Shown: positions 11,397 to 35,035, numbered from the stretch's first letter. The stretch: 55,643 nucleotides of DNA from Perkinsus chesapeaki ATCC PRA-425 (GCA_013115145.1 JAAPAO010000191.1:1-55643); one strand, 5' to 3'. A program made the numbers and translations. Notes: generated from the sequence alone by a model not told the origin.

Positions 11397-14300
11397 ATGC
11401 TTATTTCCAGCAAGAAGCGGGCCAAGGTAAGACTAACAATAGCACAAGTCGGCGTGCTGCTGAAGAAAGAGATCTCCATCGTCCGAAAAAGCCTTCTCAC
11501 CACAGTCCTTACTACGGTATTCCCCGTAGTGGTAAGCTGAGGGATACATGCTTCAGCTACAGTAGCGCCGGCCTTAGGCACTATTTCTCTTCTCCTTGCC
11601 GAATCTCGGCAGCGGGGACAACCGAAGGTTTACGGGGCAGCCAGTCTACCAGGAGCCATTGTCAGCTAGAGATGCTCTAGCACCGAGGAGGTAAACGTGA
11701 CCCCACAAGGCATTGACTTTGAGCCCTTTGACAGGTTCCTTGACAGCCCCGTTTATCCCGCCAACACGCAGGTGCCTTACTCTGATTCTTGGATACCATT
11801 CGAATGGTCGTCGACCGAGCAACGCATTTGGTGGGCGCCCAGTACCGACCCGATGGTGGCAACCATAATTCGAGGTATAGTACGTGTGTTTCGTTATGGC
11901 AGCTCTTACTGTCAGTTTCCGCTTTGATGAACGGTGTCAATACCTCCGAGCTCCGGGGCTTCGCGAGCGAGGCCGAGTTGAAAAAGGCCTATGAGGACGC
12001 ACAGTCTGCGACTTTTCTAGCTGGCGTTGTCTTTGAGCCCATCGACATCACACAGCAGATCAATGTGCGATACAAAATCTTAATAAATGGAACGTACGCA
12101 CCTAACACCGATCCTGGAAAACAAACAGTTATCATAGATGACACGAGCCAGGCACTTGTCCTAGACTACGGCAAATACATCGATACGGGTTTCGTTGCGA
12201 TCCAGAATATGGTTGATAACGCCGTAGTTAGAGTGTTTGCCGGTAACTCAACCAACCTCACGGTCCGCCCTCTGAACGCTGTCCAGTCGTTCCCAAGGCC
12301 TACGGTTCAAGCAGCTGATGCGTCGTGGGTCTTCAAGTGGTTACCTGGTTGGTGTTTAAATATAAGCATCTTGTTCTGGTTCACTTCTGTTGTAACGAAG
12401 ATGGTTTATGATAGGGAATACGAATACTATCGTTTTTTTCTCATCATGAAGGTATCAAGATGGGCCTACTATTTGCACTGGCTTTTTTACTTCTGGTGCA
12501 TATCCATAATCCTCTCCCTTGCCCTAGTTGGTATTTTGTTTGCAGATTCGGTGCTTGTCCTTGCATCCTGGACTTTGATATGGGTACACTATCTGCTTTT
12601 CCTTTGGCAACTCGTTGTTGTTGCCATAGGATCATCAACAGTTGTTCGCTCGGTTCAATCTGCCGGCTCAGTCGGTCTCGCCTTCACTTTCATAATAAGT
12701 GCGGTTTACATCGCCCTCGTCCTCGGTAAGGTCAATGATCTCTCTCAAGTCAAGACAGCTCTTTCGCTTATCCCGTGGTTCGCTAGTATGCGAGGCGGCG
12801 AGATAATGGCCAGCCTTGATCACAGAGGGCAGCGTGTAGGCCTCACGTGGGCCAACGCCTGGGAGTCGGAATTCGGCTATCTCCTCATCACACAAGTCTT
12901 CGGCATTATTTTATTCGGTGCTCTGTCGGCCTTCATGGTCATGCCGAAGGTCTTCTTTCGTCGTCCTTTGTTGGTTCAAAAATGCGATAGTGTCGGAGCA
13001 AACGAGCGGGTTATGGAAGACGCTATCGTCGAACACCCAGTTGTGAATGTCGCAGAGGTGACCAAGCTCTTTTGTCGGCAAGATAAATCAATATTGGTTG
13101 CTGTGGACAAGGTATCCTTCAAAGTGGGGAGAGGCGAAATTCTTGGTCTCCTTGGCCATAATGGTGCCGGCAAAACAACGCTCATCAGAATGCTATGTGG
13201 CGAGCTCAACCCTGATAATGGCGAGATCAACTTCCTATCTTCTGCCGATGGACGAGTTAATCCCCGCCCTTTGGTGGGCGTCTGCCTTCAACAAGACATT
13301 CTGTTCCCCGAGCTGTCCGCTAAACAGCACTTCCAGATTTTCGCTGGACTCCGAGGCTGTAAAGTTCCCAGTGAATCTGAAGTTGATGCGATGATGCAGG
13401 ATGTGGGTTTGGATAATACTGGTCGTGATGAAGGTAAGCTGTATCTCTAACATCACAGTGCATCTCTATTTCAGGTATCTCAACCTATTCCGGGGGTATG
13501 AAGCGGAAGCTGTCTCTGGCTATCTCGTTGCTTGGAGATCCGGACTACCTACTGCTCGATGAGCCGAGTGCTGGCATGGACCCCTACTCACGTCGTTGCA
13601 TCTGGGAAGTTATCCTAAGATTGGCCCACGCCCACGGAAAGACTATTATAATGACCACGCACTTCATGGATGAAGCAGATATGCTATCAGACCGAATAGC
13701 TATAATGAGGAATGGGCAGCTTTTGGCGTTGGGCACCAGCCTTTTCCTCAAGTATAACATTAATCGTCTCACGCCCGATGATGCCTCTGTGAGTGGCGGC
13801 TATACAATAACAGCAACCTGTAAAATGTGCTCCCAATGATGACTATTGCGTTATTATCTCGAGCAGGTTCTTCTACTGAGGCTCGATCGGAGGTCGTAAG
13901 GAAGCTCCGGGCTCTCATCCCAACTATTGGGGACTCAAGCGCAGGGGAGAAAGAACTATGTGTTCACCTCCCTGTGGGGTCGGAGAAGTTATACGCGGAT
14001 GCTTTGGATATTGTGAACGCCATGGGATCACCCGATGTCGCCGTTGGTCTCACGTCACTCGAGGACGTCTTTCTCGCCACGGCGAAGAAGGACGAAGCGG
14101 GCCAGACAGCGGGCGATTCGACTTGGCACGGTCCATCTTCCGGTACAGAAAACAGAATATGGCAACCAGTTGACGACAAGAAGCCTTCACAGATGCGTAA
14201 GTCCTCACGATATATCTATCCGTCCAAGCCCTTAATGGTGCAGGTGCCGTTCTCCATTTGGCCAGATTGACTACCCTTATGGAATATCGGACTCCAAGGG

Positions 14301-17300
14301 TCATCTTCTTCGGCAATATATTGCCAATCATATTCATCCTCGTTGGCTTCGTATTATCCTATCTGATCGACCCTAAGGGGTCCCTGGAGAGTCCACCGTC
14401 TCTAAGTCTCCTGCCATCAGCTACAACGCTCGGCTCAACTGGGCTCTTTTACGTTGAAGGGGATGCCTTCAACCAAGCCTCGCTTGGATCACCACTCCAA
14501 TGGACTTCCAGTCTCCCATCTGGAGGGTGAGTTCTATGCTGTTATTTATTGACATCCAATTGCGCACTTAAATTTGACCCTTGCTTGGGGAACTTTTGAA
14601 AAAATAGCGTTACGTGTTTCCGAAAAACGCCTTCTTCCTCCCGTATGTCGAACGCGCTTGGGCTTGTCGTTTTGAAGCTTCCTTGTCACAAAGACATTCC
14701 CTCGTATCTCCGTCTCTCTTCTCATTTAATCACATACTTCTTCTATGGGCTCACCACGTGGAAAGTACTGCTGACATACTTCCTATAAACATATATGAAG
14801 TGAACAGTGTGAATCTTTGTCAACAGCCTTGTTTGATTTGTATCGCCTACATCTCTTAATGCCACCCTGGCTCCAATCATGATTGTCGGTCACCTTATTT
14901 CAGGGATCTGTTGGCCCGTTATGAGGATAATGGTACCTTACAGTATGACCCGAATGTTGTCTCGAGTCTCCCCATGTCGATTTCTGCTTTAACTAACTCC
15001 ACGCTGTCTATGATACCTTTCCCATCCATCTCGGTAAGATAAATCCAATACAAACATGCTTATAATAACTATTAGGTGTCCGTAACTAATGATCCATTAC
15101 CATACGTGAAGTCCTACCTCATCGATGTAACCCAATTATTGGTTCCGATGTTTACTATGATGGGGTTTATTCCATACGCTTATGTTGTAATACGTATGGC
15201 CTTCTGGAGGGCAGATCGTATCATTACTCAGATGAAGCTCATGGGTGAGAATCTTCTTCTGATTTTCTTTGCCCCACTAACTCCTACTAGGTATGTCCGT
15301 GCGTCTTCAGTACGCATCCTTGTTTGTCCAGCGGCTTATCTTCGGCTTTCTGCCAGCCTTCGTTATCATTCTAGTCGCTGCCGGAGCTTTCGGCTCTCAG
15401 GTGAGTTCCATACACTTAGTTTACCAGAAATATTTGGTCAGTTGCTCGGCGATGGTGGACGATGGCTGGCTTATATCCTACTGGTCATCACCACCTTTGT
15501 CGCTTTGATACCCTTCGCAATGATGCTCGCACCTTTGTTCAAGACGGGCCGGCAGGCCGGTGACTCGTTCCCTCTTATGTGGAACTGCCTGTCCATCATC
15601 CCCTATATAATCGTTTGGATCCTCTCAACCAACTCAAGTTCAAGTAAAGCTGCCATTCCTTTCGTTCGTTCTAGTTACTGGTCTGCCATAGGTACACGCA
15701 AAATCGGTGAAGTTATCGGAAACATTATGACGATAATACCGACGCTTGCGTACCAGCAGGGGACACAGAAGATTCTCGCCCTTCAGGCAAGGATCCTACA
15801 GTCTGCGGAGATAGTTCCCCTTTGCAGTTTGCCGTCGACCGTGCGTCTAAAGTTGTGGACTCTCCTGTCGAATGGTCCGATACGTTCGATCCTAGCAATG
15901 GAGTGCTGACGCCTATTGTGGTCAATGTGGGCGTCACCATCATGTGTAAGCTAACACCCGTAATGCTAATCGAAGATGAGCCCTCTCAGCTACATTGGTA
16001 GTCTGGTATCAAACCCGGGACTTGACCTCCAAGCAGATGAAAAAAAGAAAGAAGTATGACGCTAACAATGAGGAACTGCCGGAAGCTGCGGACCTTCTGG
16101 AAGAAGCTGTCCTTGCTGATAAAGCGACACAGGGAATTGCCGTACGAACCCGCAAACGTATGATTGAGCATCCAGGGCGCCAAAGGTCCAAAACCTGACG
16201 AAGATATACCCACACCAAAAGAAGGCTGCGGTGAAAAATCTTAACATCGGTGTAGCACCATCGGAAATTCTTGTACTGCTTGGGCCAAACGGAGCCGGAA
16301 AAACAACTACCATGAAGATGTTGACCGGAGAGGAGGTCCCCTCCGCTGGTGAGCCTCAAGCGAGATTTTGGCAACTTGTTTATCGCCGTATTTAGGTATC
16401 ATCAAACTTGGTGACAGTAGAGACTTCGAAGCCGCCGAGCGGGGTAGCCTGAACTTCAACTCGCTTTACAAGAGGCAGGTCTGTGGTTATTGTCCACAGT
16501 TTGATGCTCTCTTCCCGGAGCTCACAGTAGGCTGCTGCTGCTCTCCGTGACAGTTTCTTGGGAGTTATCTGGTCAGGTTAAGGAACATCTGCAGCTTGCT
16601 TGTACTCTAAAAGGCCTCAAGACGCGTTCGGCCATATCATCTCATAAAGCCCATGTTGATGCCATTGTGGTGGCTTTGAATCTAGGTATCCCCATCAGTC
16701 TTTAAAGTGGTACATCTCTGTCAGAGCCTCACCTAAACACACGATCTGAAAGACTATCCGGTGGTAATCGACGTAAACTTTCCCTCACCCTCGCGGTGAT
16801 GGGCAACCCTTGTGTGCTCTTCCTCGATGAACCCTCCACAGGGATGGACCCTTCAGCTAAGCGCTCCGTCTGGAAGGCCCTTCGGTGAGTTATCTGACGC
16901 CACAGTAGTTTAAAGTCATTCTCGTTCAGAGGGGAGCAGTCACGTCCTGCCATGCTTATGTCTACTCACTACATGGATGAAGCTACAGCGTTATCAACTC
17001 GTATCGGTATCATGATCAACGGGCAAATGCGTGTCGTTGGCAGCGTTGCCGAATTGGCGAATAGGTGAGTCGATACCAAGAGGTGGGTAGTTTGTATTAT
17101 CCCCCTTGGTCAGATTCAGCCGTGATATCTCCATCGAGGCCTCGCTTCGCCCTCACTGCTCCGCGTCTGAGCTTGCAAATGCGTTATCGTTTGCCCTAGG
17201 CGGTGCGGATGTATCAGTCATTGAAGACTTCAATCGGTCGGCTATCCTTCGAGTTGCCGTAGCTCATGGTATAGCTCCAACTGAACAGATAGCAGAACTG

Positions 17301-17414
17301 TTCCGTATAATGGAAGGCTCTCTTAAAGAGCGATGCGGTGTTATCTATTACAACCTTAAACTAATGAGTCTCGAGCAAATTTTTATTAACCTTGTGCGAG
17401 AACAGAGAGAATAA
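11397..17414 (+). CDS. Full-size ABC transporter, subfamily A (TMD-NBD-TMD-NBD), multi-exon; start approximate
   Basis: N-terminal [15 protein letters not shown] followed by a TM helix. NBD1: GHNGAGKTT (13154-13180), [34 protein letters not shown]2: GPNGAGKTT (16282-16308), [29 protein letters not shown]-terminal SLEQIFINL. xLEDVFL linker motif. Confidence 0.95.
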
Positions 17415-17675: not shown

Positions 17676-18543
17676 TCAAGGCACCACCACCATCACAGTA
17701 GTTATTGAGTTGTTGTTGTGCTTTTCACCATTGATCAGCAAAGTAAAAAGCATACAACGAGTACATGGTATCGGGAGAATCTGATCGAACAAGTAGAGCG
17801 AGGAGACAATTTCAATGAATTCGTTGATGCTAGAAATACTTAGCTTGGTGAAGTTGAGGTTCGTGAACAATCTCATGACAGGTTCCTGGCTCTCCTCAAT
17901 TAGAGCATAAATAGCAGCGAGTCTCGGCCAGCCACGCTTCAGCTGATGCGGCATAATACGGTGAACTTGTTGATATGCATAACACGCTCACATTCTTCAT
18001 CCCTTCCGCGACGAGTGTACTTGCTACACGTTTTCCTTCCCACTCGAGATAAACTTCGAGCCAACGGATGTATGCAACCAATGGCCGCTCTTTGCCGTTA
18101 GTTGGACTGAAAAGTCGACTTGATACTTCTACTTAGTTTTACCCTACATCTGAGCGAGTACAAGTTCATCTAGAGAGTCGGGTTCTCGTGGCGGTAAAAG
18201 CTGAGTGAGCATGTAGCCAATAATCTCCTGAAATGGAGTATGTATGTATAGTCATCGTGGCAATATCGCTGCCAGGAAAATGACACTGCGAAAGAGGTAT
18301 TTTTACCTCGCCCTCAGGCTTGGTGTGTACCGCTAGATATGCATGGTCATAGCCGGACGAGCTCACACGCTTGATTTGATGTAGCTCACTGGACTGCGCT
18401 TGCCTATAGGTTACGTTTTCGGGAGGCTTCTCCGGAGAGCGGTAGGCCTTGTGATGCTGCGATGTCACAGATGAGAGTTGGATAGAGATCGTTGTTTGAA
18501 TCAGCTCAGATGTGATCAGGATAAAGAAGACATGGTTTTTCAT
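17676..18543 (-). CDS. Signal-peptide GNAT-family acetyltransferase (array copy A)
   Basis: MKNHVFFILITSELIQTTISIQ N-terminus; PPENVTYRQA; AYIRWLEVYLEWEGKRVASTLVAEGMKN|LKRGWPRLAAIYALIEESQEPVMRLFTNLNFTKL. Confidence 0.8.
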
Positions 18544-19065
18544 CGCGGAAAAGAATCCTAAATCATTGGGAAAAGTTCTTCCGGAATACAAGGGCCATGA
18601 TGGGTGATTCGGCTTTCTAGGACGAGTGTCAGCAACTGCAACATGTCTGTTATAAGTGCCATAATAACAACTTTTCATGACAGAAGTCACAACTACTCTA
18701 CATCGCTTAAGAGATCTCAGATGGGGGACTCTTTGGGTAGCGGTATACATGAGTCTCGAATCGTCCAACGTCGAGTTCTGAAAGAGAGCATATCCATTGG
18801 GCAGAGTAGGAAAATACACCACCGAAAAAACAAGCACAGTTCTTACAAAGCACGTTTGGCTAACGCACGTGAAAAATGTTGCTGTCATATACAGTAACGG
18901 TCACAGTGCATACCGAAGCTTAGGTACCGTGTGAAAAGTAGCTTGCAGTGATAATATAGGATATATAAGATAATATAATATTATATAGTAGATGAAGCCA
19001 GGTAAGTGTTTTCATGCTAAAAATACTGTACGTAGCATACATAGAACTTCTCACACAAATGAAGC

Positions 19066-20149
19066 TTAATCGAGCCTACTGGGAATGCAGCTACAGCGAT
19101 TATTGAACGTACGCGTACGCGCTTTCGAGGTCAGAAGAAATCCAATCCGGGATCTCGGGTTACCTGGTATACGGACGAATCCAACTCGTTCATAGACACT
19201 AGTGGCTGAGTTCTCATAATCTACTTCCAGATACACTGCCAGCATGTCGGGCCACTGCTTTTTCATCTGTGAAAGCTACTGCTACCGGCTTAAAGTAAAG
19301 TTCTTAACGTACTTCCTTCAGAGCTCTCCGGAGCATTTCTGTACCAACTCCCTTTCCCTGCGATCTCGGGTCTACGTTTACATTCGAGATGTAACCAATT
19401 AGAGTGTCGGATGGGGACCTGTGGCTCAGTAAGTCAACGGCTACAGTAATTGCTCCTAACGTTATAAGGCACACTACTATGATAGTATTATTATCGGAAC
19501 TACTAATCTATGTTACTGAACGAGTCATGACTACTGAAACCACACTGTAGCGAGCGGGGGGCATTCTCAGGCTGAGTGTAGCAGTACCCAGGAAGCATGT
19601 ATTTTTTGCTTTTCTCATTTGAAGATGTTGATATCCCTGCCTTCACGGTGCCAATTACAACCTAAACAGCAGATCCTATGCAATCTGGAGCACGGTTCGG
19701 CACAATGCCACTGAGTTATTAAACGATAACATCCTCCACACTCGCGGATCCTTTATTATAGGGCCCGTGAGTGTAAGAGACTGCTATCAAGCACCTGGTG
19801 TGGGACGTATACCGACCTCATTATCTGGCACCGTCCGATTCATGGCCACAAAAATGATTTGCCCTTCTGTATCAGCTCCTTCAACTTCATCTTCCGTGGC
19901 TCTCCTGTACGTTACGTTGGCCGGTGGAGGCCATTCAGGTGGGGGTTGCTTCATCACCATAGGTTGCTGCTCCTGTCGTGTTGGAGCAGCAGAAGACACT
20001 GACTCGTGTGGCAAAGGCTTCCGATCGGGCTTTCGAAACCGCCGCCTACTCGACTTTCTCCTGGAGGATTGTGTTTGCCCACCAAGGGAGAGGCGAGCGA
20101 AGAGCTGTATGGCTTGCCCAGCGATTATGATCAGTAACAAACTCCGCAT
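19066..20149 (-). CDS. Signal-peptide GNAT-family acetyltransferase (array copy B)
   Basis: MRSLLLIIIAGQAIQLFA; PPANVTYRRATEDE; IGYISNVNVDPRSQGKGVGTEMLRRALKE|MKKQWPDMLAVYLEVDYENSATSVYERVGFVRI (motif A QxxGxG and C-terminal Y..xGF). Confidence 0.88.
19474..19495. repeat. Degenerate 22-bp scar (2 mismatches)
   Basis: CTACTAT GATAGTAT TATTATC. Confidence 0.55.
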
Positions 20150-20339
20150 TGATGAAAGTAAGCTGCAGTAAAGCTATGGCGACGAATATGGCTCGACACC
20201 GATCTGCTGATCTAGTGCCCCCCAAGTGTCCTGCTAGACACACTCAGTGAAGAATGAGTTTGTACCCATCACCATATAGAGCAAATCGGAGAGGATAATA
20301 GAACACGGCTGCCAAGCGAAAGTGAACGCAGGAAAAAGG

Positions 20340-22332
20340 ACTAAGTAATCATGATCCATGAGATTCCACACTGTCAGCGAAGGTCTCTGCGTACTCTTCA
20401 CATGACATAAGCTTCTTGTCCGGGCTTTCCTCCTCTGAAGTGTGGCACTGGCCTAACAGTTGTCTGGTCTCATCTTACCCAAGGAAGACTCCATGGATGA
20501 GCCCTGTAAAGTCTTGCCCTTTTCCATCAGAGTAACTCCAGTGGACATCTACCGGAATGACATACACTTGGCGATAAAGGATTCCTTCCTCACGGTCATC
20601 GTTGATACAGCTGATGGTTGGACGGTGTTCAGCCTAGTGTACTCCTCAGCTGGCGGAATGAACGCCTCTGGCAGCCCTGAGAATCTCTTTTGTTCCATTC
20701 CCTCAAATCATTATGCACCGGTTTGGGGACGGCTAGCTTTAGAAGTTGCTGTTCTGGCTTTGCTCTTCTTGGAACCGCTGGACGAAGTACGATTATCACT
20801 GCTTGTTCCGCGGCTCCTAGGATCTTGAGGAGCGTCAATTTCGATATCTCCTTCTCCTTGAAGGTTGTAGCTGAAAAGCTATCACTACTGAAAAGCTATG
20901 TAACTGCAGACGTGTTTGTATGCCATCTCGATATTTATGCTGTCCCACTTTTGTTTCAGTATGTACACGAGAGATACCAACTTTTTAGCGACTTGCCCAA
21001 GGAATGCGAACGCACTGCATGGCTCTCCCTGCGCAAAACGCGCATGACGTGAAGCAGTAACAGACTGATACGTGCGTTTGAAGTTTCAGTAAAACGGCAG
21101 TAGTAGATCGGGTACGATACAACGATTACTACAGCTACACCTACTCACTTTGGCCTCGCGTGACTATCTGGCAGCTTATCTTCGTTGACTTTCTCAATCC
21201 AAACTATATTCCCCTCGGGGTCATGAGCGTAAGGTTTGCTGTGCAAGTCCGCGGCAAGACTTGAGACCCTTTCGATCTTAGCCGCCTGCTCTGCTCGGTG
21301 ATCCTCGATGGCCTGATCCGACAAAATACTCGACAGTCTATCGCCAGCGTTACCAACCTTCTCTTTGGCAATCTTCTCCTTCGCCTCGACTTGCTTGTTT
21401 TCTCTCAACGTCTCTTCCTCCTCATCGCTTCCATCCTCTTCGTGCACTTCAAGATGAATAACCCGCGGATCCGACCCCCCAGCCAAGGTAGAGGCACCTG
21501 AGGAAGTGCACATCAAGGTTTTATATAACGGATATCGCAGCAGAATGCATACCATCGCTGCGATCGTCTTCCCCTTTTGACCTGGAAGAGGCTTTAAATG
21601 GCATATTCATGCACGTAGGTTACATAGCTGTTAACTGCTTCCCAAAATCCATTGTTCTCATCCCACTGGCTGACTCTGCAACGCTTGCAGTGGATGCGGT
21701 TTCTTCAATGCTTTCAACCACTCGGACAGGAACCGCAAACTTTGCCCAGCTGTCTATCGGTGGCGGCCTTGCCGGGCATGCCCACATGTCTTCGTCTTCG
21801 GGGAGATCGCCTGTGATCAATACACATTAGCCGATTTTTCCACTGCGTGTTTACCGCCGATCTTTCGCAGCTCTTGTCTGAGGATATCGTCTCCCGGATC
21901 GAGTGGCACAAACGTAACATCAATGTGTGACTGAAGTGCCTGCACCGCAACACCGTGCGAATGTAGGTTGCTGCAGTTCCTACAGCTATCGTCTCCTTAG
22001 CTGCATACTTGATCGAAAACTCCTCCAGTCGGTGCTTATAGAGCATCCTACCTCCAGCATCAAGGATCACTTCAATCACCTTTTGAGGGACCAGTTGCGC
22101 ATAAGAAGTTTACAGATAAAAATACCGTAAATCGCAATCAATGCAAAAAGCTTCCCCACGAAGGCGCATGAGTGCACGATTTGTAGAGACGTTTGTAGCC
22201 AGTGGATTTGGAAGTTTACATCTAGTGTCCGACCTCAGAAGCAGCCTCCTCAGCTTGACGAATGTTCAACTGCTCGCTATCCTCTTGATCTGTCTGCGGC
22301 TCGTTTGGGCTCGGCTTTGTGTCGACGGGCAT
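20340..22332 (-). CDS. Multi-exon protein with a C2orf81/DUF4639-like N-terminal region; ends approximate
   Basis: IEVILDAGGRMLYKHRLEEFSIKYAAKETI ... DEDMWACPARPPPIDSWAKFAVPVR resembles the remembered W..xEP...IDSWA.G.VPV motif. A later exon reads KPYAHDPEGNIVWIEKVNEDKLP after a charged helix. Confidence 0.55.
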
Positions 22333-22431
22333 ATGTAGCAAGTTAGAGAATGCTTACAACACTTGTTCCCTATGTGAAGTGATGCCCCGTGCAGAGCTCT
22401 ACTACAACTGCATCGACATGAACGGTGTCAC

Positions 22432-23440
22432 TCAGAGACCAGTAATAGTGGCGAGCGCTAGGATGCCTGCGTATAAATGCCAGCGAAAACGAGCAAGTCC
22501 CGCGGAGTTAAACGTCCCTATTCCGCAGCGGTGGCCAGCTAGCATGAGATAACGAGGGAGAATACTCATGGTAGCATTCATCGGACAATTGATGGAAGTC
22601 GAAGTAAGGGAAGGCGTAACCTCTCTTGTCCCTGCTGAAAATCTAGATGAGTCAGATGGAGCATTACTACTGTAGTCCTTATAAGCCATTGATTGTTTCA
22701 CGAATGGATAACACCGTTTAACAATGGCGGCATAGACAGCAAACATCTTCTTATCAGTGCCACAGAGATACACAAACGAGTTATTTTGTGTCCTTCTCGG
22801 ACCACAATGCTCTTATTAATCATCTAAGGCTCATCAATGAACTGTAAGGGAGAAGTGAAGGTCGATGAACTGCGATTCACAACCGTGAAGTAAGTATGAC
22901 GTAATCGCTATGCGTGACACCGCTATCGCATTATGAGATGGAAAGAGGATACATCATTGAATGACGAGGAAAATGATTAGACCCACATTTTTCGGCTTCT
23001 GGATCGACGGTGACGAATTATCGACGACCTTGGATACGTTCGAGCAGCTCCCATTTGAAACGTCATCAGCATCCCCACTTCTATACTCAAGCTCAGAAGA
23101 CTCATTGGGCCCTGGATCCCACTGGGCATCTTTTCCCAGCTTGACTCTTACGGAGGCAGTAATTGGTGGCGACCATGCAAGGTAGCTCGAGAATAAGTGC
23201 TGAGTAGTTCATATGCAGAATATACTGAATCGGATGCGAAGAACCCGCTCAGAAAGTGTGAGAACGGTGAATGTGATTTAAATAGATTCAATCGGCATTT
23301 GCCCAGGCTTGGGCTCCCAGTGATCCGAAGTGGTGAAGTATCAAACTACAAGTTCGCTGAGCTGAAGCTGAATCCTCCTTGCGACATTGAGGAGCATGTG
23401 AGGAGAGGAGGATGAGATACTCAGTGCTCATTGGAATGCC
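22432..23440 (-). pseudogene. Possible decayed hypothetical gene
   Basis: Protein-like frame (SSYLAWSPPITASVRVKLGKDAQWDPG...) interrupted by stops; no family recognised. Confidence 0.22.
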
Positions 23441-23648
23441 TGCTCAGGTAGAGGGGCGTCACAAGACCACACTAATTAATACAGAACGTGCGCATGCGTA
23501 CACTAGTTGAACTTCTGAAGCTGCTTGCGATTGCCAGAAGGCCTAGAATCACTAATTGATAACAATAACTCGCTATTTGAACATTCACCACGAACAGCAA
23601 ATTGCAATCATAATTATTCGCCGGCGATAGGGACATGCTAAAGTAAGT

Positions 23649-24608
23649 CTAATCTATTTGCATTCCTTTCGGTTCACGGGATACTTGTAAAGCATGTAAG
23701 TGCTTTTGGCGGGTGGACCTGTAGTGAGGAGTCAAGAATTGTCCATCAGGGCGAGGCTCGGCATGACAACCCTCACTTTGCACGAAATCAAAAGTTTCTA
23801 GTGACTTACAGGGGACAGTGGTAAAGCCGGCATTTGTGTACAATCTCTTAAGATACTCTTCGCTAGGCTCTTCTCCCGGCTCATCTTTGAGTACAATAAG
23901 CTGCACGGCGATAACTCTCGGCCACTTGATTGGTATCTGCCACCATACGCTTCTAGCCAACTAGTTCGAGTTGTGAGATCCGCATAAGATTGGTATATAT
24001 CACAGATTCATCCGAAATCCACATTGAGGATGTATTCAAGCAATCTGGTAGCGATACCGGCATCGGAACAACGTCATTCAGGTACATGACTTACATTATC
24101 AAGTGCCTTCGGTACCATCATGGATGCGACACCTTTCTTCCTCCACTGACTGTGGACAAATACATGCTTTATTTCGGCAACATCATCACCTCTACACATA
24201 CTTGGCCTAAAAGTCGGTATTTAGATTACGTGGTGCCAAATTTACAATTGATCCTTGATGCACATAGGCAAAACATCCTCTCTCGTATACTCTACATATC
24301 CGACTACGTTCTGAAGGGGGAGGGAATAAGTATAAAATAGAGTCGGAAAGCGCAAGGTCTACATTGGTGTAAGGTCGAGCTTTGGGATCGACAGCGACGA
24401 ACCTCCGACCATTTTTAACACATTTGAGACCTTGCCCGCTGAGAACGTCCTCGATATTCCAAGCCCGATACTCCAGCTCGGAGGCATTGCGCCCTACACC
24501 CCACTGGGCAGCTTTCTCTAGACGGGCTAAAGTGGAAAGACTTGCAACTGTCAGGTCAACGATATTGACAGTCAGATGAAGAAGCAGCGCGGAGTTCATA
24601 TAAAGCAT
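23649..24608 (-). CDS. Signal-peptide GNAT-family acetyltransferase (array copy C)
   Basis: MNSALLLHLTVNIVDLTVA; GRNASELEYRA; AEIKHVFVHSQWRKKGVASMMVPKALDN; KWPRVIAVQLIV...YLKRLYTNAGFTTVPC. Confidence 0.85.
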
Positions 24609-25075
24609 ATCTTGAATCGGCCGAGGTAACAGCTAGCTGACAGAATAAGCGCAGGGTAACTCGACACAGGTGTGGTCCACACATCAAGTAAGAAGTTGCA
24701 AGACCACGAACATTAATGAATAAACGGTCATCAGTGACATAAACATGCTGAAGTGGGTTAACTTCATGTGCATTCTCTTCTCCCCACGGTGTACTTGTAA
24801 ATCATGAGAGTGCTTTCGATATATGGACCTACATGCAGGAGTGAAATCCAGAAACTGATATTGCATATAATTTATTTATATATTATATACTTATAAAGGG
24901 CATGCTTATCTGGCCAATGGCAGACGGTGAGTGTGCTGCAGATTGATGACACACAACAATATGAGCAATGTGATATATACGAGTGAATAGTCCACTTGGT
25001 ATTCAATACAATGGGAACAAGCTGAGCTATGGTGATAAATCTGCCATATAAGATAAACGGTAATGACTCATATAC

Positions 25076-26031
25076 TTATTGCACTATGAGCGTACAGGGT
25101 GGCTCAAGTTGAAGCAGGTAATAGGAATGCGCAGCAAACACTACTCTGAGCACGGTGCATGGGTCGCTATTGCAGAAAACTTTGGTTGGACAAGAATGAC
25201 GCAATATGAACCATTCTTTGTCTGGTAACTTACAAGGGACTGCGGTGAAGCCAGCTTCCGTATACAACTTCTTGAGATACTCTTCTTTAGGCTGCTTTCC
25301 CGGTGGTTCTTTGATTACCAACAGTTGTACAGCTACGGCGGTTGGCCATTCAACGAGTATCTACAACCAGACACCCTTCAGTCAGCGAGTTTCAGCCAGC
25401 AACCCAGCACAGTAGTTTTGCTAGTATTCGTCACAGCTGCTTCGCACCAACGCTATTATCGACGGGTCTTACATCGTCGAGTGCCTTTGGTATCATTGCC
25501 GATGCTACACCCTTTCTCCTCCAACCTGGGTGGACATATACGTGCTTTATCTCGACAACAACGTCATCGCTACACATTTTAGGCCTGAAAGTCCGTGTCC
25601 ATTTCGGACGGAACCAAGTGACCTATGTATATTCGCCGGACTGGTTTACAACTGGCTTTTGATGCATGATGAAGGAAATTTATCTCTGGTAGATAACACA
25701 TATCCTGCGACATTCTGGAGAGGAGTAAGCGGGGATAGTAAATACCGACTAAAGGCCGAATGCAAACTAATCTCACATTGGTCTGGGGTTTGGCTGCGGG
25801 ATCGACAGCGACAAATCCTCTTCCGATTTTCACCCGTGAAAACCGTTCGGCTGGCAACGTATCAGGCCAGACGTCTCCTTCCCCCGAAGCCCGGTACACA
25901 AGCTCAGAGGCGTTGCGGCCAAAGCCCCAGTCTTTTGGTCCTTTGAAATGGGCAAGATTGGGAGGATTGAGGATTCCAACTGCCTGGAGAAGGACGATGC
26001 AAGCTAGATTAAAAAGCAGTGTGGAGTGCAT
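25076..26031 (-). CDS. Signal-peptide GNAT-family acetyltransferase (array copy D; close paralog of C)
   Basis: MHSTLLFNLACIVLLQAVG; GRNASELVYRA; VEIKHVYVHPGWRRKGVASAMIPKALDD; EEYLKKLYTEAGFTAVPC. Confidence 0.87.
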
Positions 26032-26399
26032 AATGTTTGGGTTGGGTCGAGAAAAAATAACCTATTCACAGAATAGACAAAGCCTTTGTGACAAAGGTCA
26101 ACTCGACACTGTTGCAGCCGGCCGGAGTGGTAAATAAAGAGTCGCAAATCCAAGACAGTTCATCGGTTGTTTGTGATGCAATCAATTGCCGTCTCATCAG
26201 GGTATAGTCAGTTCACATTGACAAAGCTCGGTTGACTCGGAAAAGTATACCGCATTAGCTTGTAGTTGCCAACGCCTGACAACGGGGTTCGATCAGAAAA
26301 CGCAAAGTGAGTCATAGCTATCGTTATCAACTGAGGATTCGCTACCGATGAGCCACCCGACGAGCAGCCACTACTCGATGGCACCCGTCAACTTCAGTT

Positions 26400-27128
26400 G
26401 CGAGATTCATCGTGTGGACACACAAAGGTTGCTTCTATTCAGCCATAGCAATAAAAATTCGTGTTATCATGTCATAGAGACCGCTGCGTGCAGCCTACCT
26501 TGTATAGGGACAAAGCCCGCTCTGGTATACAGCTTAGTCGCATTGACGCTCCCGGGGCCGACACTCAACTCTGCCGCAACAACGTCCGACCAGTTCTCCT
26601 GTATCTGAGTATCGTGCACTCGAAGGTTGATCGCCGATCTCAGGCCGATCTCACGTCGTTGAGACTCTCACGGAGCAATCTTGTACCCACACCTTTGCCC
26701 TGCCAGTCTCTTATCACATTTATTGCTTCTACAACAACCAAGCGTCCCGTGCCCTCTGGGAGCAACCTGAGCGGCTAGATCACCCGAGACAGAGAGGGCG
26801 TATGACGCTACTCAGGTTCGTTTATGTACGACGTTACTCTTCCTACAACTTTCTGACAGAGAAAGATTCACATCATAGACAGCAGTAGGGAAGGAAGCAT
26901 TCCGAGCTCAGCATTGCTCACCCGGCCGTCCTTAGGGTACACTGCGACCCAGGTGTGAATAGGATAGGCATGCTCCAAGGGTGGTAAGGAGCTATACAGT
27001 CTATCACCGGGCTGGGCTGGGCCGTAGACAAGGTCAGATGCTGTGAGGGCCTGCAGAGTTGTTAGCTTGCTGAATGCTCCCTCGACAAGCATACTTGGCC
27101 ACATTATGAAGTGACGGATGATTCGCAT
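26400..27128 (-). CDS. GNAT-family acetyltransferase with probable signal peptide (array copy E); 3' end approximate
   Basis: MRIIRHFIMWPSMLVEGA; ASDLVYGPA; AINVIRDWQGKGVGTRLLRESLND|IQENWSDVVAAELSVGPGSVNATKLYTRAGFVPIQ. Confidence 0.82.
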
Positions 27129-27389: not shown

Positions 27390-30300
27390 TTATGGAGTTC
27401 TCTAAGAGAACCTACACGGCTGGAAATCGGGTTTTCGCGCATGCGGCCGCTTCGTTGTCTCGTCTCTCGAATGGGTTCCGATTTCATGCATTTCATGGTT
27501 GTGCATCGACTCTCCGTGCACTAGCGCAAGTTTCCCAGGGGCTGTTCAATAGACCTCGTCCGACTTTCAAAAGCACTCTCAGGAGAGCCTTTACATCTGA
27601 AATCCGATCCTAGGAACGCTCTTCCATTTCAGGAGAGGTAGTCTATTGCACACCCTGCGATAGTCTCTCTGATCTGCCTTGACCCCCACTTGACATCAGA
27701 CGCAACAGTGCCAGTTTCATTCACCGTAGTGAAGGTTCTATTGCTGCATGAATATAGTTATCTCATTATAACATACTTGGATGACATACTGATCAGCATC
27801 TCTAACATAATAACACGGCTGAATTATCATGGTACAAATCATCTCAACAACACCGCACCGATCATCACTCTTCTGGTTTGCCATCAAACTTCCCGAGCAT
27901 TCTGCAACAACGAAACAACATTGCCGAGCGGCAGCCGAGGCACGCCTACCTGAAGCTGACGGGATTCTTCGTCTGAGGCTTCGGGAAAGGTTCCAGCGGC
28001 TTCTTCGGAGATTGCGCCGCTGCGCACGCACTTGCTGTGAAGGCCTGGGCCATCTGCCGAACCTGGTGCGAGGAAACACATCTCCAACAGTAGAAAACGG
28101 AGAATTTTACCCGGTGTGGCTTCGATATAGTTAATGGCGTCAAGCCTGGTATGACCCCCGGGTTCCGAGGTTTACCAATCTTAGAAGGAGTCACTCCGGG
28201 GTTCAACGGTGTTATCTTGGGCTGGGAATTTGACGGCTTCAGAGGATCTCGAGTCTGAAGGAAATCATCCTCGGAGGCTTGAAAAATACGATGTTCGAGC
28301 TCACCTGCTCCTCATCATCAGTTGCCACGTCTGCTTCGGACTCTTCATGAATGATTTCCACTGGAGCGTTCTCTTTGTCACTTTCCTTCTCGGTCGGCTG
28401 GCCTGGAACACAGCACAGATTCCACGCTCACTCGGCCGCATCGACCATACACTGTGGGAGCTCTGACATTCGGACACTCAAAGGCGAGAGAACACCTTCT
28501 GCCTGCTGCCCTCCACCTACAGAGGGTTCCTTTGGAGGAGTCTTCGCTGACGGAACCTAGTAGCAAAAATCAAGTTCTTGAAGTTGCCTATGTTAGATAC
28601 TTCAGTGGGTTCTGGAACAGTCTCACTCTCTGCCTCCCTAACTGTATTGGCTCTAGCCTGCCACCCCTTCCGAGCCGCCTGACGCGCACCCTCACAAGAA
28701 TAAACACCGTACGCACGAACCTGGAAGGTCTCCTTCACAGTCGGTGGCTCTTCTGCCTGCTGCGGCTGGACTTCAAAGCCTTTAGACGTCTCTGCAGATT
28801 GATAGCCCATCACACCCACGACTGTGCCTCCACCTTGCTCGTCACCATTATGATCATGACAAGCCCTTGCCGATCTCTGAGCATCTGTTAAAGCATCACA
28901 CTCCGACTATCAGCGCCGACGCCAACGTTACCTCTCATAGCCTCCTTGATCGCAGCGTTGTAGTCGCTAACACCAGCAATGCCCGTCTTCAGCGCCTTGA
29001 GCTCATCCTGGGCCTGGGAGTGTGCGTGCAGCAACCTTGTTCTCTACAATATGCAACGATAGACCGGAGACCGTGTCACCACGGACCTCGGCAGCCACAA
29101 CGGTGAGCTCGTCGGTGACCATTTCTAAGGCGCCCTCGAGCTCCTTCTTTTCCTTCCTCAAAAAGTCCAACTTCTTTTCGGCGCTCTCCGCCCTAGCCTC
29201 CACGGCCCGCTTCACATCTGACCACTCAGATCAATACAACTAACTGCGAATACACCTACTCTCAAAAGAATCCACATCATGCTTCAGCTTCGCCGACTCC
29301 GTCTTCAGTGCCTCGAGTCGCTGCTCGCTTACCGTGAGGCTCCTGAATAGCAAGGGTGCATGGGGGCGGACTTTCTTACATTGCGATAGCTGACAGTTAC
29401 CGGCAGTACCACAGAGTAAGTAAGCGAGTAAGTGTTGTAACACACCCCAGAAACAGGACAGTGGAGCGCCGGTGGTGAAATGAAAAGTCCTTTGTTAAAT
29501 GCCCAGGATATTGAAACTACTTTGAGGAGGTTTAATAATACTTAGCGCGCTCATCGATTAACATACCTAAGTTGTTACCGAAACGATTAGAGTCTAACGC
29601 GCGGTGTAGATGAAGATAAAAGCCAAACAATACCAAACAGTTGACCACTACGAGCAATCTCGAAGACTCCCCACCACCTACCTCATGGTAACACTAGTCG
29701 AAGTTGCTGTTGTCCTGGTCAGTGGCCTCTGCGATGCACTAGCTCCTAATTCTGGTATAACTATCAACATATACCTCACCGAACCCACCGGCCTCCTTGA
29801 GCTGCTGTACAGTTCGTTCAAGCTCCTCCTTCGCCTCACACACCCTTCCGAGCTCCATTGAGAGTCGCTGAGCCTCAGCTTTCAAGCCAGTCCTCTCTTC
29901 CTCGGCTTCCTCCAACTCTTCCTTGATTCTCCTGTACTTGGCCAGGCCCTCCTCCAGCTGCTCCTTCTTGTGCTCGTATCTTGCCTTCCACATTTGACAC
30001 TCCTCCTCGCATTCGTCGAGCCACTCATCACGCTTCTTAACCTGACGCTTACTTCCAGCACGCATGCTCCGGCAGCGGCGGCGGTTACCTCCATTTGAAG
30101 CTCCAAAATCATATTGTTGCATTTCTCCATCTCGCCAGCTTCGACTGGCTCCGCGGTAGCAGCTCTTGTGACTCCCTAACAATGTAACAGTATCGCAGAC
30201 CCCGAAGAACTAGCCGCGGAACAGGAAAAGCTCGGCAGCTCTAGTGCAATAAGCGACGCTTAATTCACCTGCGGTGCCGACAAGCGTACAGAAGGTAATA

Positions 30301-33300
30301 ATATAGACCCATATATAAGAAATAGAGTTTACCTAGTGAAACCACATACAATACCCGAGCTGTTCAAGCCACCCTATGGGCTTGAGCGACAAGTAGGATT
30401 CGCTAATGAGGATTAAGTAGCGAAAATATCGCACGTGAGAGCAGCCCACTTACCAACATTCCAGCAACAGCCTCATCCATCTCAACACTCAAACGGCTGC
30501 GGACTTCATGAGACTTCCTTCTATTCTCATTCGACGACGCTGATTTAGCGGCAGCACTTGGAGGCAGCGGTGGCTTCCCAGCAGCAGCGCCTATGTGCAG
30601 TATGTCACCAACTCCCCAGCATTCTCCTTACCACCGGTTGCTGCTTCCTCCTTCTCCTTCAGCGCTTGCTCCCTTTCCTCAAGCCTCTTTTCAAGCAGCT
30701 CTATCTTAGACTCCAGACCAAATACCTGGGCCAAGCTCAGTCAACATCAGCGATGGTCTCCAGCAGCTCACCTCAAGCTCCGCAGTCATCTTCTCCTCCT
30801 CCGCCTTGTTCATTCTCGCTCGTGCTATCTGTAGGTCCCCCGGCAAGCTCTAGACACACATCAATCTACTCGAATCCACGCATCCCCACCTCGAGAGACT
30901 TGAGCCTCTTCATCAGCTCCTGGACTTCAGCCTCCTTGCCCTGCTTCTCCCTCTCTATCTCCTGCCATCTCGCATTGGCCGCATCCTGCACATCCTAGCT
31001 TACACTCAATAGCACCGGTAAAATCACCTGTTCCTCCCTCAGCTCCGCAACCACTGCCCTCTCATCGCTCAATTCAGCCTCTAGCTTAGCCACCTTCGCC
31101 TTGCTAGCATCACGCGCTTCCTCAGCAGCCTCCAGCTCAGCCCGTACAGCTGCTGTGCTCTCTTTCACCCCGCCCTGCAACGGAGCATACCGTTTGCTCA
31201 TTATAACCCTTTGAAGGGCCGAGTACGGTTACTAGTCTGCCATCCCTACCAGACGCCACTGCGACCACCACAGGAAATTTTTCGGAGCGTTCAATCAGTA
31301 CAGAGGTACTCAAATGCGGACTCGAAGTTCCGGTGGCGAAGTTATGGTTCACAAATCCTGCGGTTGTCCTACCTTAACTGCCTCCAACTCCTCCCGAAGC
31401 TTTCGCAAACGACTCCCTTCACTCTCCAGTTCGCTACGAAGTGACTTGATAACTTCCTGACTCTCGTTCTGGAGCTTCTGTAGTGCCTCTAGCTCCCTCG
31501 CCAACTCCTCAGCGTGCCCTCCCTCCGCCTTCGCCTACACAAGAACCTTCCCCAACTTTATACAACGCCAATAGGATAATCTAGCCGACAAAGCGAAAGA
31601 GAATCCCTTATTTAGCAATACCATTCCTCCTTAGCGCCAAAAAGGTAGTCTGCATTAAAGACTAATTCCCACCTCATCATCCCGCTGCCTCTGAAGCACC
31701 TGCAACCTTTCACTCTTCTGCTTGAGTTCCTTCTTCAGTGACTTAATGGTGCAAGCAGCTTCCTGCTTTTCAACTTCTCCCGTATCTAGTTTCTCTACCA
31801 GAGCTTCGGAGCGGTTCTGAGAACAGGTGCTACAGCCGAAGGCCAATACGTGCCGTTTGGGTCAGTAGAGAAGGCTCTTACCAAGGCCTCATCCTTGGCC
31901 TGTAGCTCCAGCTCCAGTTCCTGCTGTAGAGTTTTGATCATCTCTCGCGCTTCGGCTCCAGCTCTCTCTGACTCCTCAGTGACTTTCTCCAACTCCTTCC
32001 GCAGCTGCTTTATTTCCTAAATAAATCATCACCATCATGCGTGTCGGAATATCTGTCAGTCGCCTCTCTAAATTATTTCGCCGAATCGCCAAGCATGAGC
32101 GTGCTAAAGGACGTACAACTTACTGCAATTACGTTGCATTCCAACAAAATGTCCTCTTCCCACCAACAAAGCCGTGGCTTGACCGCCCGACCAACTCACC
32201 CTAGAGTCCTTGCCAGATCTCCTTGCCGAATCCAGCTGCTTACGTAGCAGCTTGATTGTCTCTTGGCTCTCGATGTCCTTGTTCAACGCCGTTTGCAATG
32301 CCCGACGAGTCTCCTCCAACTCCTGAAACTCCACTTCAGAGCGACCAATCTCCTCTGGAATACTTCATAGACAGCTGCCGAATCTGGCGCGGGATCAATT
32401 CTGGACAAGTCAGCCGCATCGTCATGGTCCAGAGTAAGATCGAACACACTGTCATGAGCGGCACTGGCTCGACCGGGGACCTGCAATTGATGCCAAAACT
32501 AACTGATGCTCCCACTACTCTATCAATCCTCCCTGATACGAGCAACTCATCCACAGACATCATCGAGTCCCGCCTCTTCTTTGGGTCACTGAGAGGTCAA
32601 TGAGCTAAAAATTGACCACGGGAACGACAAGTGCCACTTTATATCAGGACGCCATCGCCGACAAAAAGCAACACTTCTGACTGTGAGCTGGCGTATCACC
32701 AATGACTCCCCGCGGATGCTCTCCGCCGCTCACCTTGGCTTGGCTTCCGGTGTAGAATCGTCGCCAGATTTCTTTTTCTTCTTGCCAGCTGACCGTACCT
32801 CCCTCGTACGCTTCTGAGACCGAACCGACTGAACAGAACCGAGGGAGGCTCTCGAGCAGCTCGCCAGCCACCTCCGCAACAACAATGCACCCTACCGCAT
32901 CGGTGTCGTCGTCACCATCATTGCAATGACTCACCGGCAACTCAGCCAGCTCGCTCTCGGCGCTTTGGTCCGGACTAATTCACACTCTCCGTAATCTGCC
33001 ACCAACATCACTTACCTGTCATCCGCTATTCCCGACTCTATCAGAGCATCCGTTGCGTCCTGACACTAGCCAGACTCCAACACCACAGCGATCCTCAGAG
33101 CCTACCTCCTGTGTCGAACTGCGGCGCTGTGACGCCTCAGTATTATTATCGCCGCTGAAATGGAGGCAATGTCAAGCCCGGCCGAGCAGCCCCTCACCGT
33201 TGATAATCCTCCAGTACACTGGGGTCTATCGAAATATTCATCACACTGCTGCCGTTACGGTTCGTCCTCGGATCACAGTCTGCGGTACAAAGTAAACGAC

Positions 33301-33973
33301 GCAGGTTCGATCCCGGCACCCCACCAGATCGAATAAGCAAATTGAACGATGCCGCCTCCTTGAATCCGCTACTGCCAACTTCCTCCACACACGCCTGGTC
33401 GGAAGCCCTTAACAGCCGTCTGTCCCCCAATTGCCCTACATCTATCTTGGCGTTGTTGTGGCGAATATAGTAGTTCCGATGCTCCTCATCGTAGCATGTG
33501 AATGATACCGAGCCTCGCTCGAACTCGCTGTCCGTCATGATCCACCAGGCGTTGCTATCATCTTCTCCAATAACCTTCGCCTCGACCTTCAGCCGTCCCT
33601 TTGAGTTTCGCGTCTTGCCCGACAGAGCCTGAGCAACCACACTGTAGACCCTGCAATGTATTTACTGAAAAAATAGGAAACTAGATTCAAGGATGCATTA
33701 TATGATATTATTGCTCGTACAATCCTTCATACACTGGGATTCAACTATAATAAAAACATAAATTAAAAACGCCCAAAGGGAGGGCAAACCCGCTCCTATT
33801 GTTGGCCACAAGACAGCTCAGCAAAGGGACCGCTGCTCGCTCAGTTCTCTCTTCACGCCCGAGACACTTCACAATGCCACTCCTCCAAGACTCACCGTCC
33901 AAGACAGAGCTACCGCGTTCTCCGGTATCTCACCATCACTGTGCCATTGACGGAGACTATCCTGTGGGTTCAT
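27390..33973 (-). CDS. Very large multi-exon coiled-coil protein with an AbfB/CBM42-like segment near the N-terminus (could be more than one gene)
   Basis: Many E/K/Q/R-rich heptad exons (29003-32334) with GTAAG/GTGAG donors. The 33194..33640 exon has GSVSF..NYYIRH..GSSGFKEAASF. Confidence 0.65.
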
Positions 33974-34079
33974 CGAACACGGAAGAATCCTCACAGCTCT
34001 GAAAATAACGTCTTAGGGAGGCTTAAAGTGACGTCAAATGTATCCACACCGTAACTGGCATTCCTTCCCCAACTGTGAA

Positions 34080-34260
34080 AGTATTTTTTCATTTGTCTAT
34101 TTTTAACATTTATTTTTATAAATATCTGACTATTCACTTATTTATATATCTATTTATTTTATTTCATTTATTTTTTTATTTATTTTCAACATTATCTTTT
34201 CACCGATGTTTCCTATTCAACTTTCTACTATATCTTCGCACTCGTAGCACATTTCCTATC
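34080..34260. repeat. T-rich low-complexity tract (TTTAT-like)
   Basis: Visible TATTT/TTTAT degenerate repeats. Confidence 0.7.
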
Positions 34261-34881
34261 AACCGTTACTACGGTATCTTAAAATACTTTCTGTTAGATC
34301 CACGCAGGAAGTATATATGTACACTATATATCAGTATGCTGGTAAATTTGTATCCATGCAGACTTCAGCGATCAGATTCACTTCAGCAGGCCAGCATTAA
34401 AGCTGCATCAGCCCCTGCCACACCTACTTCGCTCCAGCTCCCAAGCCAGCACTCGCGTCCCTGTCCGGCAGGATCAGAAATATTTGTTTCTTCGTCACTA
34501 ATTTAACCGATCGTGCGCTGCAACCAATCTGGCAAGGATGACACTGCACCAGCGCCCTCGACCCCAGAATAATGAGCTTACATGTTGATTAACTTGATTA
34601 GATGCTCCGATAGTCGCCCAAAGCGGGTCGAAACAGGAAGGCTCGGTGGCCATAGTGTGCAAATACTATCACGGAAACCCACACTTCTGGCAATATTTTT
34701 AATGTAAGTTTTTACGGGTAGAAAAGGGTAGTCTCAAAGCTTGAGGGATGGGCAGTCTTTCAATCGCGCAGGACCTCGTGAACCAGTTGAGGCCTTCTCT
34801 TTGAACCCTTGCAACTATGCTAAGCTATCGCTGCTCACCCACCGTATAACAACAAGGCATGGTGACAGCAACCATTAAGTC

Positions 34882-35035
34882 TACATAATATTATATCTAC
34901 ATATCAATATAATATGTACTTATAATCGATAAACTAATATAACGAAAAAGATTTTGCTATATATATTACTATCTATCTATAATATATTTATAATGCATAA
35001 CTATATATTAATTATATTATATATCACCAGTCTAA
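34882..35035. repeat. Strongly AT-rich (TA-rich) intergenic island
   Basis: TACATAATATTATATCTAC...TATATATTAATTATATTATATAT. Confidence 0.75.

Follow-up and report, generated by a model that had tools for sequence, protein, structure and literature searches.

To our knowledge, N-terminal acetyltransferases (NATs) are almost all cytosolic, the known exceptions being plastid enzymes and one apicomplexan enzyme of the endoplasmic reticulum (ER) membrane. Here we describe a locus of Perkinsus chesapeaki in which five genes for GNAT acetyltransferases, designated A to E, lie on the minus strand between positions 17725 and 27128 and encode putative hydrophobic leaders of graded strength. The analyzed window is the entire 55,643-bp contig JAAPAO010000191.1 of assembly GCA_013115145.1. 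A first-pass annotation of this DNA had stated that these genes cannot be matched to any described system; this is too strong, since analogues are known in apicomplexans (TgNAT8 / Pf3D7_1437000; PMC10038149), mammals (ATase1/ATase2; PMC12423556) and cyst nematodes (Hg-GLAND1; PMC4828791).

TgNAT8 / Pf3D7_1437000 is an ER-resident apicomplexan GNAT with a catalytic domain that is predicted to be lumenal (PMC10038149). It comes from a lineage related to Perkinsus (Myzozoa) in which secretory proteins are widely N-terminally acetylated (PMC10038149); however, as compared by description only, it differs from the Perkinsus family in having two predicted transmembrane segments, no signal peptide and a single essential gene. 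Exported apicomplexan proteins are also widely N-acetylated. The enzyme for the PEXEL-cleaved proteins ('PEXEL NAT') is still unidentified; Plasmodium offered a single plausible candidate, which has been excluded for HRP2 and HRP3, the two exported proteins examined (PMC10038149). An ER transporter for acetyl-CoA is known in Toxoplasma (PMC11557232). The mammalian ATase1/ATase2 (NAT8B/NAT8) are lysine acetyltransferases of the ER lumen that use imported acetyl-CoA; they resemble the predicted Perkinsus proteins as GNATs in which a membrane or signal segment at the N-terminus precedes a catalytic domain on the lumenal side (PMC12423556), but they do not rank with the best matches of the family in sequence or fold and were likewise compared by description. 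Hg-GLAND1 / FAM7 shares with our locus its origin in a eukaryotic parasite and its intron-containing GNAT genes; the nematode genes encode signal peptides and are proposed to give rise to secreted effectors (PMC4828791). They were horizontally acquired from actinomycetes, whereas the Perkinsus family has its nearest relatives among eukaryotic and archaeal NATs, and gland-cell expression has been shown for Hg-GLAND1, whereas the Perkinsus genes are known here from sequence alone.

NAA60 (NatF) acts on the cytosolic face of Golgi membranes (PMC7790372) and possesses a C-terminal membrane-binding extension, α1-α2 helices and a catalytic His; the Perkinsus family has an N-terminal leader instead of the extension and neither the helices nor the His. 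The archaeal NAT (Sulfolobus Ard1 / SSO0209) and NAA50 are cytosolic and leaderless and have a full α1-α2 segment, whereas the Perkinsus family has leaders, lacks these helices and is predicted to be lumenal. Our literature search found no paper on leader-bearing GNATs in Perkinsus, and public databases give automatic names only for the family members.

Gene models and shared architecture

The gene models were reconstructed by aligning C and D, the most similar units, as DNA and then reading the junctions in A, B and E. The five genes, each with its leader, β1 motif and β4-α3 acetyl-CoA motif (motif A), are as follows.

17725..18543, minus strand: gene A, 196 aa, ATG at 18543; exons 18543-18307, 18227-18148, 18106-17992, 17942-17840, 17780-17725; leader MKNHVFFILITS..., β1 NVTYRQ, variant motif A E-G-K-R-V-A, β4 Tyr present
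19017..20149, minus strand: gene B, 229 aa; exons 20149-19817, 19661-19588, 19418-19313, 19266-19164, 19090-19017 (last-exon acceptor uncertain); strong leader MRSLLLIIIAGQAIQLFA, then a Ser/Arg/Lys/Pro-rich linker of ~50 aa, β1 NVTYRR, canonical motif A Q-G-K-G-V-G
23654..24608, minus strand: gene C, 204 aa; exons 24608-24363, 24310-24246, 24206-24095, 23936-23810, 23718-23654; leader MLYMNSALLLHLTVNIV..., sequon NAS, β1 ELEYRA, motif A R-K-K-G-V-A, Glu at the β4 Tyr position
25076..26031, minus strand: gene D, 207 aa, recent duplicate of C with 54% identity; exons 26031-25777, 25714-25650, 25584-25473, 25360-25234, 25140-25076; leader MHSTLLFNLACIVLLQAVGIL, sequon NAS, β1 ELVYRA, motif A R-R-K-G-V-A
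26208..27128, minus strand: gene E, 177 aa; exons 27128-26922, 26852-26812, 26766-26655, 26604-26499, 26275-26208; weak leader MRIIRHFIMWPSMLV..., β1 DLVYGP, motif A Q-G-K-G-V-G

All five genes are distinct, and their spliced models are complete, with intact open reading frames (ORFs) and GT-AG junctions, which agrees with the first-pass annotation of five co-oriented multi-exon genes; the β1 and acetyl-CoA motifs quoted there are all present in the minus-strand translations. Two corrections concern the extent of the array: its edge had been placed at 17676, but the stop codon of A is at 17725-17727, and the five genes do not form an uninterrupted array, as an unrelated annotated gene of 396 aa lies between B and C.

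A common five-exon plan is found in A to E, with introns of 39-223 nt in phases 0, 2, 0 and 1 at equivalent protein positions. A phase-0 intron lies directly after helix α3 and before the W-P/S segment in five of five genes; it had been reported for A, B and E, where it is confirmed, and the full intron is also present in C and D, for which only the donor had been given. The phase-1 intron directly follows the helix with the L-Y...G-F motif. The same break points occur in two P. olseni family genes from other assemblies, and thus the five-exon plan goes back to the ancestor of the family. In B, C, D and E, no other in-frame ATG lies between the upstream stop and the leader ATG.

The models were validated with a hidden Markov model (HMM) built solely from family members at other loci of three Perkinsus species. 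All five match it with 90-115 bits and E-values of 1e-29 to 1e-37 (112 bits for A, 107.0 for B, 114.7 for C, 90.5 for D and 100.6 for E). The GenBank splicing of B, which contains a 33-aa insertion, was dropped since it scores 98.7 vs. 107.0 bits, and a shorter 23-nt exon 2 of E was dropped in favor of the donor at 26812 (97.5 vs. 100.6 bits). Over the whole window, the family HMM finds only A to E and no hidden further copies; a match at 22957-23208 (E 0.022) was taken as noise. A pseudogene reading of A to E was ruled out by the intact ORFs and by the purifying selection on C and D described below.

GenBank annotates the five genes as only two proteins. FOL47_003045 (355 aa; 17725-19960) consists of B minus its leader and last exon, joined to A, and FOL47_003047 (452 aa; 23654-27104) consists of E minus its first eight residues, followed by partial D and by C. 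In these fusions, B, D and E are without their stop codons and conserved last exons, and D is also without some of its N-terminal half; we therefore read both proteins as gene-predictor chimeras. The GenBank internal junctions of A, C and E are identical to ours: A corresponds to residues 196-355 of FOL47_003045, C to residues 276-452 of FOL47_003047, and E, including its distant last exon, to residues 1-167 of the latter. Many annotated family members have two to four GNAT units, and some of these are probably further fusion artefacts.

GNAT fold and relationship to N-terminal acetyltransferases

The proteins A to E belong to the GNAT superfamily, as had been proposed from their motifs. Against the Pfam family PF00583 (Acetyltransf_1, gathering cutoff 20.7 bits), B scores 39.2 bits and the mature part of C 25.4 bits; the peptides encoded by exon 3 reach 23.9 bits in D, 23.7 in B and 21.1 in E, and the isolated domain of A scores 17.7 bits, under the cutoff. 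In the 29-row alignment of the family, 27 rows match PF00583 at E<=0.001. The fold comparison suggested in the first-pass annotation gave a consistent result, as AlphaFold models the mature part of C as a GNAT fold, a mixed β-sheet with α3 and α4, at a predicted local distance difference test (pLDDT) score of 91. The model is confident without the leader, and therefore the leader is no stand-in for the missing α1-α2 helices. When a P. olseni member is modeled at full length, its residues 1-35 come out unstructured (pLDDT ~50) and detached, and the domain begins at about residue 38.

Motif A (Q/R-x-x-G-x-G/A, between β4 and α3) reads QGKGVG in B and E, RKKGVA in C and RRKGVA in D. Its position 6 is G or A in 29/29 family rows and its position 1 is Q or R in 23/29; position 4 is G in 16/29 rows and Arg, as in A, in 7/29. 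The α4 Tyr and Phe are nearly invariant, and the W-P pair after α3 is conserved. When the 29-row family profile was compared with solved structures, the following matches were obtained.

Arabidopsis NAA60 (AtNAA60): E 1e-15
Sulfolobus NAT/Ard1: E 4e-14
Human Naa60: E 2e-10
NAA50: E 3e-10
RimI: E 2e-9

By this profile comparison, the nearest known relatives of the family are NATs. The structural margin of NAA60 over Ard1 and TacT is just 1-2 Z units, and SpeG-type polyamine acetyltransferases are close seconds in Foldseek.

The catalytic pair of NAA60 is formed by Tyr97 (β4) and His138 (β5) (PMC7790372). We mapped catalytic residues via the profile alignment to AtNAA60 rather than by superposition; the β4 Tyr equivalent is present in A, B and 22/29 rows. 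NATs hold their peptide substrate partly with the α1-α2 loop and also with a Tyr of the β6-β7 loop (PMC7790372). The α1-α2 helices are absent in both AlphaFold models, and the β1-β2 spacing is just 14-24 residues, so that the loop motif is absent; with this peptide-holding element missing, the proteins must recognize their substrates differently from known NATs. Of the 21 rows that have the β6-β7 segment, 18 carry an aromatic residue there (Y, F or W). The missing α1-α2 element and the variable β4 and β5 positions suggest that the substrate range may differ between paralogues. The proteins end 10-25 residues past β7 with no C-terminal extension, and their hydrophobic segment is N-terminal. We thus rejected an assignment as NAA60 orthologues, given the lack of α1-α2 helices and catalytic His and the presence of an N-terminal leader in place of the C-terminal anchor.

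N-terminal leaders

The leaders were assessed by the best 10-mer on the Kyte-Doolittle scale and by signal-peptide heuristics (a basic n-region, an h-region of 7-15 residues and small residues at -3/-1). The first-pass annotation had assigned a hydrophobic N-terminus to each gene; this holds for A to D, with Kyte-Doolittle values from 2.07 to 2.75, strong in B (2.53) and D (2.75) and moderate in A (2.17) and C (2.07), but E is only weakly hydrophobic (1.26). The heuristics rank the genes similarly, being good for B and D, moderate for A and C and poor for E. The same trait was found at other loci of three species, where a hydrophobic leader is present in 17 of 17 annotated family proteins with complete N-termini; the leaders lie 23-50 residues ahead of the β1 Tyr, and most of them start with M-R or M-K. 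The median best 10-mer is 2.6 in these 17 members vs. 1.39 in 24 non-family GNATs taken as controls from the same search, and a value above 2.0 is reached by 15/17 members vs. 2/24 controls. Judged by hydropathy, the hydrophobic leader is a family-wide trait. A sequon N-x-S/T lies at or just before β1 in A to D and several relatives, and its position next to β1 lends mild support to a predicted lumenal exposure. The linker between leader and domain comprises ~50 residues in B and 10-20 residues in the other four genes.

Taxonomic range and evolution of the family

Pairwise identity among A to E is 18-29%, except for C and D (54%), which confirms the earlier description of the family as expanded and very divergent. 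A phmmer search with FOL47_003045 against 1.84 billion representative proteins returned 54 matches at E<=0.001. The family-like matches looked up by name (21 of 21) are all from P. olseni, P. chesapeaki or P. marinus, and three further matches are on contigs of GCA_013115865.1 and GCA_013115895.1, accessions that belong to one series with that of the P. chesapeaki assembly; nine others are generic GNATs (E 1e-5 to 1e-3), two of them from named bacteria and the remainder from metagenome or read-assembly collections. About 20 of the 54 matches are without attribution, and no apicomplexan protein is among the 31 attributed ones. Within the reach of this one search and its named matches, the family looks restricted to Perkinsus so far; the taxonomic range had been singled out for such a homology check. 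A word-seeded search with FOL47_003045 returned only the query itself because the family is too divergent for word seeding; with the exon-1 ORF of D it gave no match, since the long fusions that make up the annotation here exceed the length filter. Horizontal transfer from bacteria is unsupported, since eukaryotic and archaeal NATs match best and the bacterial matches are the generic ones at E 1e-5 to 1e-3.

In the phylogenetic tree, C and D are sisters (100/100 support) within a clade that also holds P. olseni genes, whereas A, B and E occupy long separate branches, B being nearest to P. olseni genes. As reconstructed from this tree, the array mixes old lineages with one recent tandem duplication, C/D. 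The ratio of nonsynonymous to synonymous substitution rates (dN/dS) between C and D is 0.28-0.35 (0.28 overall), with dS near saturation; it rises from 0.21 in the mature part to 0.89 in the leader. The enzymes are therefore constrained, and the leader is free to vary save for its hydrophobicity, as signal peptides are. The comparison of C and D had been proposed as a check on an effector family; the overall value of 0.28 indicates purifying rather than diversifying selection, and there is no sign of an arms race in this one pair.

Only C and D share a conserved Cys-x9-Cys pair, C-I-K-x-Q-L-P-x-M-C, in the β3-β4 loop.

24246-24310 and 24095-24206, minus strand: exons 2-3 of gene C with the Cys-x9-Cys pair
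25650-25714 and 25473-25584, minus strand: exons 2-3 of gene D with the Cys-x9-Cys pair

This pair could form a disulphide, which would suit an oxidising lumenal environment.

Predicted lumenal function and alternative explanations

We propose, tentatively and as somewhat short of an even chance, that A to E are five separately encoded, probably active NAT-type GNATs (Naa60/Naa50/archaeal Ard1 type) of a Perkinsus family that work in the lumen of the secretory pathway. The N-terminal hydrophobic leader would serve as an ER signal peptide or a type II signal anchor and would place the catalytic domain of ~150-170 aa in the lumen. There, the observed GNAT fold and conserved β4-α3 motif would bind acetyl-CoA, and the acetyl group would be passed to amino groups. 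Judging from the closest relatives and from apicomplexan lumenal N-acetylation, the likeliest acceptors would be secretory, surface or secreted proteins, modified at their N-termini or lysines. Onward secretion to the host would be possible in this scheme, but it is not needed. The intact, conserved gene structure and the independent HMM validation speak for this proposal. That the family is so large and divergent points to a diversified specificity, which would suit a set of lumenal NATs as well as a host-interaction family. In a more specific version, which we regard as fairly unlikely, the family would be a panel of lumenal N-terminal or lysine acetyltransferases with their own specificities, acting on secretory proteins after signal-peptide removal, and thus the perkinsozoan counterpart of apicomplexan secretory N-acetylation.

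Several observations weigh against a lumenal function. The status of the leaders rests on hydrophobicity heuristics, the leader of E is weak by that measure (1.26), and in GenBank B and E begin at a Met codon inside our models and have no leader. The models contain no ER-retention signal and no second membrane segment. With respect to catalysis, motif A of gene A is atypical (EGKRVA), the β4 Tyr is replaced by Glu in C and D and by Val in E, and the column of the NAA50/60 catalytic His contains His in 0/29 rows, being occupied by L, R, S, V, I, E and others. Dozens of highly divergent tandem paralogues resemble a host-interaction or detoxification family more than a housekeeping lumenal enzyme. 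Finally, the five genes are represented here by their genomic sequence only.

Perkinsus subtilases are secreted virulence factors, and the presence of subtilase genes on the same contig is one of the points in favor of secreted effectors, which after signal-peptide cleavage would leave the parasite, enter the cytosol or nucleus of haemocytes and there draw on host acetyl-CoA to modify proteins or defence molecules of the host. Further points are that the family bears leaders, looks specific to its lineage and has expanded into tandem arrays of very divergent genes, and that our models lack a retention signal or extra membrane segment; precedents are the candidate effector Hg-GLAND1, a cyst-nematode GNAT with a signal peptide, and a GNAT effector of M. 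tuberculosis cited there (PMC4828791). However, Perkinsus has no known host-translocation motif or machinery, C and D evolve under purifying selection without arms-race signs, the mature proteins are not Cys-rich (zero Cys in A and E), and our literature search found no Perkinsus secretome report of such enzymes. We consider the effector explanation, which the first-pass annotation favored, rather unlikely; enzymes resident in the lumen are no less probable than exported ones. The domain could also stay outside the lumen, either behind an N-terminal anchor with the domain facing the cytosol, in a NAA60-like job at the Golgi surface, or because translation starts downstream and yields cytosolic proteins; this we regard as unlikely. 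The closest relatives NAA60, NAA50 and Ard1 do face the cytosol (PMC7790372), the uncharged stretch of D is long enough for a transmembrane anchor, many basic residues follow the hydrophobic core of B, and the internal GenBank starts of B and E would fit as well. Those starts carry little weight because the GenBank models are demonstrably chimeric here; moreover, the leader ATG follows directly on the upstream stop as the first in-frame ATG in four of the genes (all but A), and C and D have no later Met ahead of the domain. Most leaders consist of a basic residue, a core of 9-16 residues and then small residues, as is typical of cleavable signals or type II anchors, and the conserved sequons adjoin β1.

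Large divergent GNAT families are often detoxifying enzymes, and the substrates within a secretory or vacuolar system might accordingly be small molecules such as polyamines, biogenic amines, aminosugars or host antimicrobial amines. The absence of the peptide-binding α1-α2 helices of NATs, which implies a different substrate groove, the SpeG-type enzymes that follow closely in Foldseek and the non-conserved NAT catalytic His would all fit this explanation, but the β6-β7 aromatic residue in 18/21 rows occupies a position at which NATs bind peptides (PMC7790372), and we judge small-molecule acetylation to be quite unlikely. An explanation confined to gene B would be targeting to the non-photosynthetic Perkinsus plastid, with a signal peptide and the Ser/Arg/Lys/Pro-rich stretch of ~50 residues acting as a bipartite leader. 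Bipartite plastid leaders occur in Perkinsus, the linker of B has a suitable composition in a protein with an overall charge excess of +9, and a few relatives likewise have Ser/Arg-rich linkers; plants have plastid GNATs that acetylate both lysines and N-termini (PMC11546460). Set against this, the linkers of the other four genes are short, at 10-20 residues, and plastid targeting of B appears improbable.

Genomic neighborhood of the array

On one side of the array lies a plus-strand gene for an ABCA-like transporter, on the other a coiled-coil gene of 1226 aa; nothing links the neighboring genes functionally to the array. Features of the contig outside A to E are as follows.

68-721, minus strand: subtilase (Peptidase_S8) ORF at the left contig end, E 1e-22
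3394-4392, minus strand: subtilase (Peptidase_S8) ORF at the left contig end, E 5e-39
11789-17400, plus strand: ABCA-like transporter with ABC2_membrane_3 and ABC_tran domains, annotated as 764 aa, adjoining and converging on gene A
18544..18888, minus strand: in-frame, stop-free extension 5' of gene A, 115 codons with its own ATG
20349..22332, minus strand: annotated gene of 396 aa between B and C, no Pfam match and no family HMM match
27865-34653, minus strand: gene of 1226 aa with a weak CCDC39 coiled-coil match

The extension upstream of A lies in an ORF of 240 aa and has a hydrophobic start (MTATFF...VLVFSVVYF), an N-S-T sequon and a β1-like L-M-Y; its match to the family leader and β1 is not significant (E 0.019, 0.6 bits). 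It may hold an alternative or the true start of A, or be what is left of the first exon of a sixth copy. The 396-aa gene was rejected as a family member because the family HMM finds nothing there; an acidic Lys/Glu-rich ORF lies within it at 21145-21555. At 28000-38000, GC skew is strongly negative (-0.14 to -0.28) over a long stretch that largely coincides with the 1226-aa gene. Rfam and tRNA scans of the window found nothing.

Implications for Perkinsus and the Apicomplexa

Since the GenBank models at this locus fuse genes and drop leaders, secretome predictions based on the deposited Perkinsus proteome miss this family and counts of its members are misstated. By analogy with apicomplexan secretory N-acetylation, the dozens of leader-bearing NAT-like GNATs in Perkinsus, a sister lineage of the apicomplexans, would be a concrete candidate for lumenal protein acetylation; alternatively, they may constitute a host-directed enzyme set in an economically important shellfish parasite. 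Should the family prove to consist of lumenal NATs with specificities of their own, it would be the first NAT family of soluble proteins with signal peptides and could steer a profile-based hunt for the cryptic apicomplexan enzyme.

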